Assembly (NCBI RefSeq): GCF_000002075.1
Contig: NW_004797880.1
Span: 372,124 to 436,123, forward strand
Origin: Aplysia californica
Taxonomy: Eukaryota
Direction of reading: 5' to 3'
Length of the DNA stretch: 64,000 bases
Below are positions 6,351 to 57,400 of this stretch, piece by piece; the first letter of the stretch is position 1; the number at the start of each line of letters is the position of its first letter. The position numbers were made by a program, and so were the translations under genes. The notes beneath the pieces were generated by a model. That model was not told the DNA's origin, did no database searches, and saw only the letters and a list, made by a program, of their open reading frames with translations.

Positions 6351-8238
6351 NNNNNNNNNNNNNNNNNNNNNNNNNNNNNNNNNNNNNNNNNNNNNNNNNN
6401 NNNNNNNNNNNNNNNNNNNNNNNNNNNNNNNNNNNNNNNNNNNNNNNNNNNNNNNNNNNNNNNNNNNNNNNNNNNNNNNNNNNNNNNNNNNNNNAATAAC
6501 TTAACAACATACTCCTATACAACGTTGGAGCTTGAAGTCACATTCCATATAACATAAAGATATCTGTTTTCTGAAAATGCTGNNNNNNNNNNNNNNNNNN
6601 NNNNNNNNNNNNNNNNNNNNNNNNNNNNNNNNNNNNNNNNNNNNNNNNNNNNNNNNNNNNNNNNNNNNNNNNNNNNNNNNNNNNNNNNNNNNNNNNNNNN
6701 NNNNNNNNNNNNNNNNNNNNNNNNNNNNNNNNNNNNNNNNNNNNNNNNNNNNNNNNNNNNNNNNNNNNNNNNNNNNNNNNNNNNNNNNNNNNNNNNNNNN
6801 NNNNNNNNNNNNNNNNNNNNNNNNNNNNNNNNNNNNNNNNNNNNNNNNNNNNNNNNNNNNNNNNNNNNNNNNNNNNNNNNNNNNNNNNNNNNNNNNNNNN
6901 NNNNNNNNNNNNNNNNNNNNNNNNNNNNNNNNNNNNNNNNNNNNNNNNNNNNNNNNNNNNNNNNNNNNNNNNNNNNNNNNNNNNNNNNNNGCGAACACTT
7001 TCATTTTGATTCAGTAATAAAAATTACTTCATTGACATATGATGATAATCATTTAGCGCTTAGAAAAAGTAAAACATACTTACTGAAACAACAAGACGGG
7101 GGATGTAGTCCTGGGACTAGTATAAGAAAATGTTAACAGAGCAAAAAAGAAATAAAAATACAAATTCGGTTTTTAAAATACCGATAGAATGTGTTTTCTG
7201 TTTATTTGTTTGTTTGTTTGTTTGTTTGTTTGGGGGTTGTTGGTTGTTGTTTTTTTGGTTATGTAGTAATTTGGTTGGTTGGTTGGTTGGTTGATTGGTT
7301 TTTAATCATTTTCTCGAAACGGCTTCAGGGTACTTTAGTTTTTTTACAGCTTCAATTTCTTAGCGAGATTCTGTTCCTCAAACTGCTTTTGATGTCCCTT
7401 TTTGTAATATTGCTTAGAAAGGATTTAATGTTTTCACATTCCATGAAAAATTATTGTTGCCAGTGGCCTTAACTTAAATTTAAGCAGACCCAACCAAACT
7501 GAAGAATGAATACAAGACAAGTACAAGTATCGATATTGTCGCGAATCGACACAACAGTTACGCACATCAATAGGCAAAGGTACGCGGTGCGACGTCAACC
7601 ACGAGCCAGTCTCTCTTTCTCTCTCTCTCTCTTGGTCTCTCTCTCTCCCTCTCGCGTCATGGCTTGTGTACGACAGTGGAGGGCGCATTGATATCGTTAT
7701 CGCCACCTACAAGCAAGAGGTGGTGTTTGCCCTCCATGATAAACCAAAATTCTGCCAGGTGTGGCTGGAGGAGAGCGTAATAGATTAGATACCGTAACTG
7801 TGTTCGTTTTTATTCCTCCTATGAGTACAGCGAAAAAAAAGGCAATTTGGAAAATGTATGTGTACACGTGTGTATTTCGTGTATGTCCAGCCGTTAATCT
7901 ATTACATCATGTAGATCTACATGTGTATATACGTACTTAGTCCTGTAAACTGAGACGTAGTTTTTATTTTTACATTGTATTGTTGGTTTGGGATTTATTA
8001 GACCAAACTTAACAATGTCACGATACAACTTCCGCAGTATTATGTGTGTGTGTGTGTGTGTGCGTGTTTTGTTTGTTTGTTTTTTCCCGAGGGGAGCACG
8101 GGCAGCTGTGTATGGCAGCACTGGGTAATTACTATACTACTAGACATTATTATAATTAATAATACTCTTAATACCTCTTTGTCTGGTCTTCTCATAGCTC
8201 TTATTCTTTGTTGCCTTTTTCTCCCCCCCCCCCCTCAC

Positions 8239-48400: not shown

Positions 48401-51400
48401 AATGAGTTTATTTTTCATCTTTTTTCAGAGAAGGGTGGTTTTTTAAAATCTTCTATAAACCCGCCAGAAACCCTAAATCTTTGGTATTGATTTTAAATTT
48501 GTCAAATTGTGAACTTATGGTTACAATTAAGTGGAAGATTTGTGGACCATAGTTGGTTGTAAATGCTCTAAGCTGATTATGTTTACTCTTTCATTGTACA
48601 TATCATTGTTGCAACACCTACCTCTGCCCTTGTTTCCTTGAATCGTTGATATAGGTACTATTGACAGGTTAAATTTTGTTGCTTCCCATTAAATCAGCTA
48701 TTTTGTATTTCCTCCTCATCAGCTAGTCATCAGTATGTTCATGGTCTTTATCTTTTTCTGTAGTTCTTTGAGACGTATGGGAATTGGCTTCCCAAAGTGA
48801 CAAACTGTCTAAAGGAAGAGAATGTTTTAATTAAATGTTTTCGGTTCTAAAATGGCTAGAAAACAAGTGGCAGTAATTTGTGTACAGTTGAGCATGCTCT
48901 AAAAGGCCACCTGTTTAAGGCAAACTGCTGTTCAGACGCACCCCCTCGTGTACATTTTAAAAATAGAGTTACTTCTCTCCTCGACAATGGGTGGCTATCT
49001 TACAGAATTTCGACTGGGCACAAATTAAATTTGTAGTGAGTGTCAGCATGAGAGTAAACTGAGTCTTCTCCCTTTTCTTTATCTAGGCCACAGCGAGGTC
49101 AGCTCCAGACAGAGAGAAAGAAATCAACAATTTGGTAAGTTGTTGTCTTTGACACAGTTTCTTGTTACACTATTTTAGTTCTTTATTTGATGGGGTCAAA
49201 CTGATGGTTGGGTGTAAGACTGATAAACGTCAAAGTGAAAAATGAATAGTTTCTAAGTTAAATAGTTGTTATTGAAACTATGCTTTATGTCTTATTTTTC
49301 TTTTATGTGTTTGTTTTTATTCTTTTTCTTCTAAATTAAAAACAAAACAAAAACAACATTAAATGTCCCCAAAATTCTGGCGATTCATAGAAACAATATA
49401 TTTAAGATACTGAAGCCATAATAATCCTTCATAGTATTTTTCACCAATTAAGTAAAAAAAAAAGAAGAAGAATATTCCTGTGCAGTCATAAGACTTGGAT
49501 GAACAAAAGGAACAAATAAAAGGGAATATTGTTGCTTCGCTTGAAAAAAGGAATAACTGTTTGCCCTTGCTTTGCAGGGTTAGTGATAAACATTTTACTA
49601 TTATAGGAAATGAATGAACAAAGTAAAAGGAAAATGTTTGTAGATCCAGAATTTAGGGACGTTTTGCCCCTTTTATATTCTCTGTGATTACCACTTGTAT
49701 CTGATAAAGTCTTCTATGTTTTCTCAAGTACATTGCTAAATAGATACGAATGACTTGGATGTTTGATTGTTGCTGTAAAATGAACTTAACATTTCCTTTC
49801 AGATATCTGTACTGTTATTTTCATTGGAAGGCTGCATGTCATATTTCATCATATTTCAATGAATATTTGGATTTTTTATATATATGTGACATCAATTTTA
49901 TGATGCATACGGTTTATTGTGTGACAGTGTCTTTTTGAATAATCCTGTTTTTGTTTTGCTTTAGTGTGAAAATGACTGGTGGAAGTAATGGAATTTTGTT
50001 TTTCTACAGAAATGTTTATTCTATGGAAAGAGTTCTTGTGATGGTGAAAGTCTTGCAGGCTGGACTTTCTTTGAAATGGTCACAGCCAAATCAGTATACT
50101 ATTGATCATCTCAAATGTTTATAAAAATTGATTTTGAGACTTTTAGTAGAGCTGTTGCAATGTATTGGTAAACAGTGCACAAGGATTATCAGGAAATGAA
50201 GGCATTAGTGTGTAGGTTGTAAATGTGGAAATAACAAATGGTTCATTGTTTGAGTCAGAACAATGTGTTTCATGAGACTTCAAAAACAAATCCCAGTTTT
50301 ATGTTGTGAGTGTCATGGCATTGGATGATTGGTCTTCGTTTACAGCGCCAGTTTTTAAAAAAAACAATCTGTGATGTTGCAGCCTTTATTATTAAAAATT
50401 TTTCTGTGTTTTTAACTTGTTGTCCATCCATGTTAATGAAAGTAGAATCCTGACATTTGTTGGATGTGTAGTGTTTCTGCTGGCAGGTTTTTGGCAAGTG
50501 ATCGTGGTAGGTTTTGGTTTTTCAGACCTGTCAAGCACTCGTATAAAATCGTAGCTCTCTGATTTTCTTTTGCCTGTTGAAGAACCCCAGTCAGATTGAC
50601 ATAAAATCCAATTTTTTTCCCTGGAATTTAATTTCTGTGGGTGGTACACATCTTATCGTAAATGATATGAAACTACACAGGTTTTCTGCGACATATGCAC
50701 GACTTATTGTATGTCATGTGAAAATATACATTTTTATTAGTGTTTATTTACGATATACATTCATTTGCCACAGTCAGCTTATAAGGGAATCTAATATACT
50801 GGGGTTCTGCAGGCTCCGATATCCCCCCCCCCCAATTTTTAGTGAGGATTCTGAGGCAAACTCCCTGTTTTTGGTTATGGAGTGGTTGGCAGGTGTGATT
50901 CTTTACTTTTTTTGAGTAGGCATTATTTAGAAACAAGCACAGTCTGGTATCTTTGCGATGATTTAGTAGCAGTATGGCAAGATCAACATCAAATAGACAA
51001 ATTGACAGCTAGTTGCTTCAGGCAAAAGTGTGCTTAAAAATGATGTTAATACAACTCAAAAAAGCTTGAGCAGTAGATAAAGCAAACAATACAAAAGAAA
51101 TAGTGGTATGTGGGTAAAGCTAATAATACAGGGTTCTCAACCTTCTTTTGTCTTGTCACACCCTTTACCAGGCTCTTAAAAAGTAATTTCACTCAAGGCT
51201 ATGCAAGCTGTTATTTGCTGTGCTGTTACCAGCAACGGTTTATTTGATTGGACCTGAACTCATGCCCTAGCGTACTTTGCATTTCCCCTTCTGAGCATGC
51301 AATGTATATTTCAGCTTGCGGTGGAGCAAATTTAGCAGTCGAACCAAGCAAGCTAAGATACCTGTGGGTTAGGGGGCTCAAAGAGATAAGGACGACATAT

Positions 51401-54400
51401 TCATTCACATGGGCACAGGGCTAACTTTGTGTTAGCATCACTATGGATCACAGTGTGGATGACCCTATTTTGAATCCCAAAACTTTATCTCGATTGTTTA
51501 ATAGAGTTTTGAATGCCCGATACCTACTTAACTGGATCCTGTCGGAGATGGATGTTTGATTCAGAGGTCCAGGTCCTTCTGCTAAAATAATCAAGAACAT
51601 TTTTAAAAAGGGAATAGACCCATATCGATGTGTGCCATACAACGTTTTAATACTTAGTGTATTAGTTTTTTTCAAATAACAGTGGCTAATGGTATGTATT
51701 TCTTGTTAACCTGTTAAGTTTAAAAGCATTCCCTCCTGCTTCATGGTTGAGAACCCCCTCGCTTTATAGATTTAAGAGTAAGGAAAAAATGAGCGCAAGA
51801 GATTTGACGGATGCTCCTTCCCTAACAGGTGACCAAGGCCGACTTCAATAACGACATGTACCTGAAGACGTTCGGTATATGTGTCAATTACGACATGACT
51901 GAGCTCAAAGGCCGTGTTCTGCCTGCACCCAAGCTGCAGTACGGCGGCCGGGTAGGCCCAGATACTGATTCTCTTTGTCACGCCTCCCTTCTTTCTTATC
52001 TTCATCCTCCTCCTCCTTTCACGTTTTCAGTTTCATGTTGTGCCTGCTATGTGCCTCACTGGAACCTCCCATGTAAAACAACTCTGTACAGTCCTTATTT
52101 CCACCCCCCACCAACCTAGTGGAATAGTTAAGGAGAGACAGTCTTAACAACCTTTTTTTTTTGTTTTCTAGTTTTTAGCAGTTTGGGTCAAAACTTAAGC
52201 AAAACTCAGCCTTTTACTTACTATATTTTGTCATCATCTTTAAATTCCATTCTTTGAAAATTTACCTCACCGTCTCCTTTCATGGTCTAGACTTTTGTTT
52301 TCAGCACTCTACAAGTCTTGTGTGTGTGTGTGTTCATATGAACTTTGTTTTATCATGGTTTGTCTGGCTCTTATGTCCTTGATGGTGGTTGGTGGTTGCT
52401 TTGGTGCATACTGCGAGGTCTACTTTATTTCAGTGTTGCTCTCTCTCTTTTTTTTTTTTTTTTGAATGGGTCTGTTTCTGGAGAAGTGCTGACATCATTG
52501 TGCGGAGCCTATGTAAAACCAAACCACAGACTTGACAACTCTTCCTTATGTTTAGGGTTTATTTTAGTCAAACAAACAACAACAACAACAAAAAAGGGCT
52601 TTTTAAAAAAAGTGAGTGTTTTGTACTCCCTATTAGCATGTGTTGTGCATTATGTGTTTTCCTTGTGTTGTCCTTGACGACTATCTTGTTTTTTTTGTGA
52701 GAGAATTGTCCTAAACTATTTTAAAAAGGAAACTGTAGGTAGTTGGCATGCGATGGTTTGTAGTTTGTTTTTCTCCTTCTTTCCTATCAAACATCTTTTG
52801 TTCTTATGTCTACTCATCAGCATCTGTGGTGCAGTGGTTAAGCACTTGGCTGTCTGGCGCGAGAGACTCGAGTTTGATTCCTGACTGAGGAACATTTTTA
52901 TCACATGTTCTCGTCTCTCTGCTCGGATGTTGTTTCCCTCACAGTCTAAGTTGGCCCAGATGGGCAGCAGTCGAAGCCTGTGTCTTAAATGATTTTAATT
53001 GAGTCGATAGGGGTGTAAAGACACCAACATGAATTTTTAAAATATGTGAGGCATGGTGGTGAAATCAGGCACTCGTCAAAATAATGAAATCAGAGAAATC
53101 CTTCATTTCTTTGGTTTGTGGGCAATTTTTTTCTAGTTTTCTTCTTTTTTTTTTGGCTCAACACCTTTTATGTCCATTTAAAAACACATTTTAGTGTGGA
53201 TTTTACTGAAAAACATTGATCAAAAGCACCAAAAAATGTAAATTTTCAGTTTTCTAAGACTCTCAGATTATGGAAATACCAAACTTTGGCGGCCGTCTTC
53301 TCGCTAATTTTACCTCTGAAACCAGACGACCCTGACCTCCTTCAATCGCGGAAGGCAAATGAACAGTTTTCTTTTTTGTTACAATGAGAACTGTGGTATT
53401 CAAGACATTTAATCCGTAATTCCGAAATTCAGAGAGACAGAAACCTGTTTAATCATACGTAGCATTTGCGCTGCTCCAGTGCACACTCAGCAACACACCT
53501 ACACCCCTCCTAATCTTACCCTCCCCATAACATACTGCATGTGGTTTTTTTTCTTTCCTTTTCCAATTTTGAACAATGGCCACTGTGTCAGTGTCTATCA
53601 TTGCATATTCTGCCCTCACATTTAACCATCTTCCGAACAATGGGTCATTTAAATAATCACTGATTGGTGTCATCTCTCGTTATATATCTGTTTAGTTCCT
53701 TGATTTTTTAAAGTTTGGTTTAAACACCCTCTCACTAATATTCCTTTGAGTGGGCTCACATTAGCAAGTGGCTTTTGTGTTATTTTTGTGGTCTGTTTAT
53801 GAGTGTGGTTTTTCACAGGTCCGAACTAAATTGTGTTTGTACGTGTTTCATGTTTGAGAACTCCCCGGAACGTGTGTGTGTGGTTGGTAGCTCTACTTGG
53901 GTGTTCCTGTAGGAAATAACAATTCCCCAGGAACCGGTGATGTGTAGGGAAAAGCGTCCGTCGTGTGCTTTACTTATTGGCCAAGGAAACAATGTGCACC
54001 GTTGCAAGCTGTGTGAGAGAATTGATCTTGCTCACCAACTGTTTGACAGTTTTCAGATCTTGCCAAGAACCTGCCTTCTTTCAGATTCTGACCTTTTGTC
54101 TGTTTTTGGACCCAGCAGCTTTCAAGCGCGAAAATTTCTCATCACAAAGTGTTTTTTTTTCTCCAGAGCTGCGGGCAACACTGTTCACTTGGTTGTCCCG
54201 GAAATATGCACAGGTTTTTGTGCAGTCGGCAGAATATCTCAGGGGCTCATGTCTTCTCACTCATCTCATTCATTTTTTTTTCCACCACGGTCATGTGCCT
54301 GCTTCATGGCTGGCCGGTCCTTCTCTTTTTCTTTTGCCCCCCAAATTAGATCCGTAAGGCCAACTTCAATGCTGACCCCTATCTCCAAACCTTCGGCATC

Positions 54401-57400
54401 AGTATCAACACACAAATGATGGATGTTCAGGGTCGTGTGTTAACGGCTCCTAAGTTGCAATACGGTGGACGGGTAAGACTAGACTCCCAGAGATAAATGG
54501 GTTTTTTCTTCATCCTTTTTTCTGTTATAAAAAAATTATTTGCACTCTTTCCCTTGTAGGGAGGTGACAGTAAGACTCCACAAAGTAAATCGTAGCTTCG
54601 TTTCCTTTCTTTAAAAAAAAAATTTTTTTCTCTCTTTTTTTTGGTCTGTTTATAACACTAAGACATGTTTCTGTCAGTCATCAATGCAAACTACCTCCTG
54701 TATAAAGTAAAGAGATCTGTTTCCCGTTTGAAAATTCCTTTCCCAAAGTGTCATGTCAGATATGATGTATCATGCACATTTGCATCACTGTCACCGTTCA
54801 GATATATATGCACCTCTTTTAGTGATTTTAAAACTTAGATAAAAACTGATTCAATTTCAATGTTTAGAGTGAACGTTTCCCAACTTTTGTAGAGCTATGG
54901 AAGTGAAAGTGAATTGTGATACATCTTTCAGATTAACACAGCTAATGCAACCCCATTGTAAGAGCTTGTCTGAAGTAGAGTAAAGTGAAGTGGTTGATAC
55001 AGTTTCTACTGTGCGCTGTTCCCACTCCATGGAAAAAAAAGAAAAGAAAGAAAGTTAGAAAGTTGCAGTCTAGATGTATAATATTGATTCGAAGGTTCCT
55101 ATTTAGTATCAAATGTTGGGAATGCATGCAGCTTGCTGTATGGATTTGGATGAGATTGGGTCTGTCTTTTGAGATACGAAGGTGATTTGATAATGAGGTG
55201 TACACATGATAGATCTAAAAAAAGGTGTTATTTTGCCATGATTCAGTGTGATAGAAAGATGGTAGAAGGGTATTTTGTTTCACTCTTTGAAATTGCATGT
55301 CAGTATGATGTGGCCAAAGAAATAAAAGTGGGGGGAGGGGGGGAGGAATAGAGATGTTGTGGAGGATATATTTTCAAATTGAAAATGGTGAAAAATTACA
55401 TGTTTTAAAATGACACCTTTTCTGCTCTTACCTATTCTCCTTGTACTAAATGTTGTTGTTAATATTCTGCAAATGATAAAGCTTATGGCTTGTATGGTTT
55501 GTCTGTTATTGTGACCCATCCGTTACAGTTTTAGGAAACATGAACAAAAAAATATCTGCCATGTGGCACAAAAAATAACGTAATTTTTAAATTTAAAAAA
55601 TCCCAAAAACCTTAATGTAGAAGGTAGGGTCAAATAAAAACATTTAATTTTTCTTGTGACTACGATGGTATAGATTTTAGTTTTGCAGAATCTGTGGAGT
55701 GATATTGTCAGAGTGATAGTTTTGGGGCAGAGCGTGAGTCGTTTTGTTTGTGCTCTCAGCCACGCATTTCAGGGAATGACAGGTTACCCTAAGAGCATTC
55801 ACGCACGGGAGCTCACACACATGCACGTAGGTGCGCATTTACACACACACACAAACACACGCTCGCGTGTGTGCCAGTGAACTTTAAAGTCGTAAGTTAT
55901 TTAATGTTTGTATTACTGTCTCTTTTTAAATAAAAAAGTGAGTTTAACTGAGCATTTTCTTGCCCCTTTCTGACAGTGAGGCATTTTGCCCTGTATCGTG
56001 TCTTCCCCTCTGTGTTATTGCAAAGTTTTTGTACATTGAATTGAATTTCTTGAATTATTTTTTGCTTACGGTTGAATTTATGTGAAATGTTTAAAAAATT
56101 AAGTACAACAGTTACAGTTTATTTATGTTTGTAAAGCTGGTAACAGTAAGTGACCAATATATTATGTATTTAAACAAAAAATATATTTTTGTAAAGTTGT
56201 GAAAAAAAAGCAGTTTTCTTTTTAAGTAAAATGAAATTCTTGTTCTGACATGGATAGTGTAAAGTTCTTTTGCTGGGTTTAGCTTAAATACATACTTAGA
56301 AGCAAAGTTATATTGAAATGTTAATTTTTTTAAGAAAAAAGATTTCTATATCTGTAACTCTCTGGTAACTGTAACGCCCCTAATCTTCAACTCTTGTACG
56401 ACCTATTTACGTTGCAAATGCTGTAAAACTCTTACTAAAATTATATAATTTTAAAAAAATACTATGTTTTTGCTTGTCGTGCAGACCAAAGCCCAAGCCA
56501 TTCCCAACCAAGGTGTGTGGGATATGAGAGGCAAACAGTTCTACCAGGGAATCGAGATCCGGGTGTGGGCCATCGCCTGCTTCGCCCCGCAGAGAACTGT
56601 CAGGGAAGATGCCTTGAGGTATGTGCTTTTACTTCTTCTTTTTACCCTTCTCCCACCGAGACCTGACATTGACAACACACTCTATGGAACATTACAGCAA
56701 CTGCTGTAAACCTGCACGTATCACTACATGGCATTGGACCGAAGGGCGAGAGCCCAGCTGTTGCTAGATCGATAACAGCAACACCAACAACTTCTTCTTT
56801 TTCTCAATAATACTGATTACATTTGCAAAGCGCATGTTCACACCCTAAAGCATGCTGTTCTGTAGAGATGAATGATCCAGACAACAGTCATGAAGTTTGA
56901 TCATCGATAAGATAGATCTGGTGGGATTTCGTATTGAATTTATCTTTCTCTGTAAATGAGGAAGGGATGCGACACGAGCTGAACTGGCGAGCTATATTAT
57001 TAAGTGATAAGATGGAATCCACAAGGAAATAGAAAGAATGGAAGTCCGGAATGTACTTGTAGGAAGGACTTAGATTCCGACCTGAAGAAGATGGAATAAT
57101 ACAGCTGGACAAAGATAGAGACTGTAGCCCTGGACAGAAGTCGGAGAGCTCCTGTTGTTGGCTTATACTCTCGATATGACGTAATGATGATGATGGTGTC
57201 AACACGGTAGTGTTTTTGTAAAGCTAAAAATTAAGTGAAAAAAAAAAAGGACACGTACACCCACCCACCCCCGCCCCCTTCAAAACTCCCTTATTTTATT
57301 CTACTCTGTTTGCCATTTAAAAATAACCGGCTTTCTGCTCTGAGGGTGATCATAGGGTGCCACTGGTAAGAACAACTTCTATTCTTTTCCCTTTTTTAAA

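Follow-up and report, generated by a model that had tools for sequence, protein, structure and literature searches.

The window, a stretch of 64,000 nucleotides that was analysed as a whole, contained on its plus strand, from approximately 39 kb to 62.5 kb, a gene for an AGO-clade Argonaute of the miRNA type. The exons encoding the N, L1/PAZ, L2, MID and PIWI domains followed one another in this order, which placed the gene in the AGO clade; L2 was assigned by Pfam and PDB matches, and the remaining Argonaute exons were assigned exon by exon from motifs in the translation. Vertebrate-type Argonaute fragments were also present among the protein-search matches. Four exons and one repeat region are considered here:

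49087 to 49134, plus strand: exon '13', upstream constitutive exon of 16 codons, also present in orthologous loci.
51829 to 51951, plus strand: exon 14a, 123 nt, Argonaute linker 2 (PF16488), present as a spliced 180-nt contig in RNA assembly X11.
52770 to 53360, unstranded: high-copy repeats within the looped intron, with a very high depth of diverged reads.
54350 to 54472, plus strand: exon 14b, 123 nt, linker 2, the major form, with contigs in assemblies X11 and X10.
56485 to 56618, plus strand: exon '15', downstream constitutive exon.

Exons 14a and 14b each matched the Pfam ArgoL2 family with a score over the curated cut-off and aligned with residues 383-423 of human AGO1/AGO2. They are equal in length, in phase 0 and stop-free, with 63% nucleotide identity, and are thus a homologous tandem pair; the spacer between them is 2398 nt. 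In X11 the two exons formed a two-path bubble with depths of 7.5 (14a) and 17.5 (14b), and exon 15 had a depth of 26.2 compared to a summed depth of 25.0 for 14a and 14b. Each exon was found on a separate 180-nt contig with 30 letters ahead of the exon. A bubble at k = 31 would have this length if both exons share the upstream exon and the downstream exon at which the paths rejoin. In X10, exon 15 lay within an unbroken 1059-nt contig with a depth of 27.7, equal to the depth over 14b (~27); only 14b was spliced, and 14a was present solely in an unspliced piece. In the assemblies seen, 14a and 14b were used mutually exclusively, 14b was dominant and the ratio varied between samples, with junctions inferred from the geometry of contigs, which drop rare forms such that rare double inclusion or skipping could escape. 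Reads from 'organism B' showed at most one difference from the exons. Two raw RNA runs had no coverage of the exons and were apparently 3′-biased, and repeats swamped the variant and joint tables. High-copy repeats at 52770-53360 and 56370-56450, in the introns flanking 14b, were abundant in poly(A) libraries.

The original prediction was that double inclusion would stay in frame, and this is borne out by the length, phase and lack of stops of the two exons; nonsense-mediated decay is thereby excluded as the cause of exclusivity. Steric exclusion, which had been dismissed, is unlikely because the AG-free zone ahead of 14b is only ~105 nt long. Instead, a long-range RNA duplex between the acceptor region of 14a (X) and the intron ahead of 14b (Y) had been proposed to select 14b. 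Its elements are the following:

51791 to 51797, plus strand: outer 7-bp arm of X, weak.
51803 to 51808, plus strand: candidate branch-point motif of 14a, recognised in the sequence, with the A at 51807 (−22), within the 11-bp helix.
51805 to 51824, plus strand: core of X, with 11-bp and 7-bp arms over the branch point and pyrimidine tract; holds a UGCUC motif that most 14a tracts have in common.
53936 to 53970, plus strand: Y, the single-copy intronic partner of X, with its core at 53945-53963, ~380-415 nt ahead of 14b.

All six segments and all 25 bp of the proposed duplex were present in their places. An 11-bp helix with two G-U pairs is followed by a 2×1 loop and a 7-bp helix with only Watson-Crick pairs, and, after a 7-nt bulge, by an outer 7-bp helix with two G-U pairs. 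The claim that the duplex covers the likely branch point and the whole pyrimidine tract holds in part, since the core overlies both but the pyrimidines at 51816-51817 are unpaired. The candidate branch-point motif fits the yUnAy consensus. RNAduplex extended the pairing over the acceptor AG into the first bases of the exon (51790-51835 with 53935-53971, −45.4 kcal/mol). In a spliced-together ensemble, most pairs of the core 11-bp and 7-bp helices had probabilities of 0.86-1.0 at both 37 and 15 °C; the outer helix is present but adds little, having a probability of 0.09 or less in the ensemble, although it does occur in the full-length minimum free energy (MFE) structure. The X:Y duplex was part of the MFE structure of the whole 2951-nt region, and the core out-competed local folding in silico, in calculations that treat folding across 2 kb as an equilibrium and take no account of folding during transcription or of bound proteins. 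Within 25 kb of the gene, Y had X as its best partner, each of them was single-copy in a search of the genome (927.3 Mb, 4332 contigs), and neither arm was a repeat. A possible 24-nt in-frame micro-exon with a weak donor was seen at 53913-53936, just 5′ of Y, and Y itself contains a donor-like GTAGGG; the RNA reads covered neither the micro-exon nor Y.

Compared to shuffled controls, the energy of the core was non-random (z −4.7 to −5.7). The full duplex was reached by none of 198 shuffled X sequences, 210 shuffled introns or 158 other 2.4-kb stretches, and the core (51805-51824 with 53945-53963) by none of 353 and 315 controls; Gumbel tails were ~0.001 for the core and 0.007 for the full duplex. 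A fixed window from −28 to −3, which removes any after-the-fact choice of duplex boundaries, was then applied to 16 acceptors of the gene and scanned upstream and downstream, giving 31 tests. The 14a-downstream test was the sole outlier at z −5.65, with the runner-up at −2.5, and a rerun with 120 shuffles gave −4.7 for 14a. When a wider window permitting large loops was used, 14a had a z of −3.8 and one other acceptor −3.2. A long-range duplex beyond chance expectation is thus found at the splice site of a variable exon. The G-U pairs, which had been taken as a sign of selection at the RNA level, turned out to be a weak argument. Four G-U-compatible differences against zero to one incompatible differences gave p values of 0.06-0.19 under a decaying DNA inverted repeat, and four are too few to separate the two origins.

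Seven further loci were found to carry the exon pair, namely the Aplysia paralog, Okenia hiroi L010 (a nudibranch), the mollusc-like L011, L097 and L100, and the invertebrate L017 and L020. The paralog is a second Argonaute on genome contig C570 (~477866-489555, minus strand; L006 and L007), in agreement with PMC9334734, which lists two Argonautes for Aplysia. Its 14b peptide was identical, and nucleotide identity was 93% for 14b, 84% for exon 15 and 75% for 14a. C570 also carries an extra ~10-kb tandem copy of upstream exons that ends just past a 14a copy with its acceptor AG lost, possibly an assembly artefact. In a tree on only 41 columns, six second copies and one single b-type exon formed a supported clade, suggesting that the exon pair is old in molluscs and that one copy was lost in some genes. 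Two Argonaute genes, with an a-type exon alone (L098, 7085-7207) and a b-type exon alone (L105, 8049-8171), suggest secondary loss of the other copy. L017 (1390-2114) and L020 (1638-2615) have two similar linker-2 exons with a GTAGGC donor on the first copy, and these pairs would be either very old or an independent duplication.

Conservation and covariation of X and Y, whose lack had been named beforehand as one way to refute the duplex, were not seen in the seven other two-exon loci, which are mostly distant relatives, and none of these had a significant duplex between X and the intron (z −1.6 to +1.7; −0.8 in the paralog and +0.3 in Okenia). The best intronic partner in the paralog lies 432 nt ahead of 14b, compared to 406 nt here, and the helix that it forms has 10 bp and keeps the same register. 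Scores were −21.0 and −20.2 for cognate pairs against −8.2 and −12.8 for crossed pairs, a contrast that is partly circular because the paralog partner was picked post hoc and shows no BLAST alignment to Y. This partner was not significant, and its position is suggestive of a faint analogue of Y. Separately, in L097 a 13-bp perfect complement was seen between the region ahead of 14b (~7881-7893) and the 3′ end of 14a (~7140-7152; p 0.02); the 13-nt stretch also pairs with 14b's own end, and the complement is lost in the related L100.

Other elements around the two exons were compared in the same loci:

51952 to 51957, plus strand: donor of 14a, GTAGGC, non-consensus.
51975 to 51990, plus strand: Z, which either pairs with W or folds onto the donor of 14a (p ~0.97).
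54243 to 54347, plus strand: AG-free, YCAY-rich zone ahead of 14b.
54557 to 54569, plus strand: W, 3′ of 14b, partner of Z (12-13 bp, ~−21 kcal/mol).

A GT(A/T)GGC donor was present in 8/8 first copies and 0/31 single-exon controls, and UGCU(C/U) in the acceptor tract in 6/8 first copies, 1/8 second copies and 2/29 single exons. Judged from the sequences compared, the conserved features of the exon pair are this non-consensus donor and the UGCU(C/U) motif. Ahead of 14b there were nine YCAY motifs in 150 nt, compared to a single-exon mean of 1.7. These elements could by themselves account for the choice of exon if the complementarity were neutral, due to chance or to a short inverted duplication of the acceptor that has begun to decay. 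Proteins and splice-site strength would then decide, by way of the conserved weak 14a donor, UGCU (Muscleblind-type) in the 14a tract and YCAY clusters (NOVA/Pasilla-type). Such a neutral origin fits the lack of a significant X:Y in seven loci that retain the exon pair, the deep conservation of the donor and UGCU(C/U) and the raised YCAY counts, and it is helped by the many places that were open to the search from which the duplex came. In contrast, the tail of ~0.001 for the core and its position as the sole outlier of 31, on the very acceptor that is regulated, argue against neutrality, and a duplex and protein control are compatible. We consider a neutral duplex possible but somewhat unlikely.

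A different structure could act on the same acceptor, namely a hairpin in which X pairs with the 3′ end and donor of 14a itself and the exon is enclosed, with X:Y secondary. In the paralog this was the preferred fold (p ~1), and L011 was similar (p ~0.7). The pairing between tract and donor was also stronger in two-exon loci (mean −19.4) than in 30 single exons (−12.6; p 0.003), although composition alone pairs pyrimidine tracts with the G-rich Gly-Gly-Arg end of the exon. In this window, however, the hairpin was weak (−10.5, z +1.4); it lacked covariation (swap test p 0.42) and did not dominate the folding of four other loci, and we regard it as highly improbable as the working structure here. 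Folding nevertheless gave the paralog a way of its own, in which the tract covered by X:Y in this gene appears to be masked by another partner, the donor of 14a itself.

For X:Y we propose, with a probability of roughly 0.55, that it is a lineage-specific long-range silencer of 14a that biases the choice to 14b. The non-random core, the dominance of 14b and the preferred fold in silico support the original prediction that X:Y selects 14b; the docking/selector analogy, conservation and the outer helix do not. Y would be transcribed 2.1 kb after X and would then cover the branch point and tract of 14a, and possibly the AG, looping 14a out such that exon 13 joins 14b ~0.4 kb beyond Y. Because Y emerges so long after X, the 14a acceptor would probably be free for a while, and 14a would be chosen only if its acceptor commits before Y appears, or if proteins keep X open. 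The duplex would thus set 14b as the default.

X:Y alone cannot block the joining of 14a to 14b, and a second element is needed for exclusivity. The crossing Z:W pairing may be that element: since Z folds onto the 14a donor, binding of W to Z would release this donor, and 14b would be looped out. Compared to shuffles, Z:W was reached by 1/80 in one of four windows, it was absent from nested ensembles, and no conserved Z:W was found in the other loci. Alternatively, proteins acting at the YCAY-rich zone ahead of 14b could be repressive. W overlaps a candidate 10-nt micro-exon of the AG..GT type (54560-54569) with a good pyrimidine tract and a GTAAG donor, which would shift the frame and might be a poison micro-exon; it had no read support and was absent from the paralog. 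Several further pairings were set aside. Two of these, between the 14a body and 54219-54237 and between 53996-54012 and the end of 14b, do exist but are lost from the ensemble. Neither a conserved hairpin linking the 14a donor to the downstream intron nor a pairing between that donor and the tract of 14b reached significance; for the latter, p was 0.052 in the swap test and 0.13 for this locus alone.

The arrangement resembles human ATE1 exons 7a/7b (PMC7797038). In both there are two duplicated exons, an element between them pairs immediately 5′ of the first exon and promotes use of the second, and a crossing pair spans the second exon (R2R5 there, Z:W here); in ATE1, R1R3 blocks the 3′ splice site of the first exon. 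In contrast, R3 of ATE1 pairs with both R1 and R4, with no significant R4 partner found here, and its five elements are conserved across vertebrates, whereas no conservation was found among the loci compared. A full ATE1-type switch, with Y docking alternately on the 14a and 14b tracts and Z:W tuning the ratio, would fit the order X, Z, Y, 14b tract and W, which is that of R1 to R5, and both tracts have a short pyrimidine motif in common; the purine run of Y is also open to pairing by the 14b tract. That pairing was, however, fragmented (−22.4 compared to −45.4), and the 14b acceptor had no significant upstream partner (z −0.06 and +0.9), making such a switch very unlikely.

Insect Dscam1 and srp, with docking/selector and bidirectional pairing, likewise have long-range intronic pairing beside tandem duplicated exons, but there several selectors compete for one docking site. 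Pairing in Dscam1 and srp generally switches on the exon next to it, whereas an acceptor would be buried here. When competing selectors were sought, Y had no significant partner at 14b and X none upstream. The analogy drawn by the original prediction thus fails at this point, and X:Y falls outside the docking/selector class as defined, since a second selector was tested for and not found and no significant duplex was seen in the seven other loci. For the same reason, the lack of a competing partner of Y at 14b, X:Y is unable to explain the skipping of 14b once 14a is chosen. A duplication model for docking-site/selector pairing has been described (PMC6071210). Ago1 is also diversified by splicing in another invertebrate, the shrimp; in the parts of that report covered here, Ago1A/B/C are told apart by an insertion of 27 residues and by their N-terminus rather than by a duplicated linker-2 exon, and no RNA structure is described (PMC3510085). 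A literature search, within its limits, found no published report of this linker-2 exon pair.

At the protein level, position 5 of the exon is equivalent to Ser387 of human AGO2 (numbering by alignment; the S387D primer in PMC5983126 shows the same motif). The residue is Asp in 14a and Asn in molluscan 14b; of the single-exon invertebrate copies seen, most likewise carry Asp. The S387D mimic increases the binding of GW182 in rat neurons (PMC5983126), and by analogy the exon switch could tune silencing through this residue. A broader reading would be that of an old, apparently unreported molluscan Argonaute linker-2 switch that exchanges Asp for Asn at the Ser387 position, with the first exon held off by RNA structure whose partners turn over: a long-range duplex and a crossing counter-duplex here, and an exon-enclosing hairpin in the paralog. 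We put this forward as a speculation that is unlikely to hold; if true, splicing hard-wires what phosphorylation brings about in mammals. Since both paralogs occur in the same genome and seemingly mask one acceptor with different partners, they offer a test of structure turnover with the exon pair persisting. If real, the duplex would be a compact and directly testable RNA-structure control of exon choice in a mollusc, acting on a core miRNA effector of a classic model of learning and memory.
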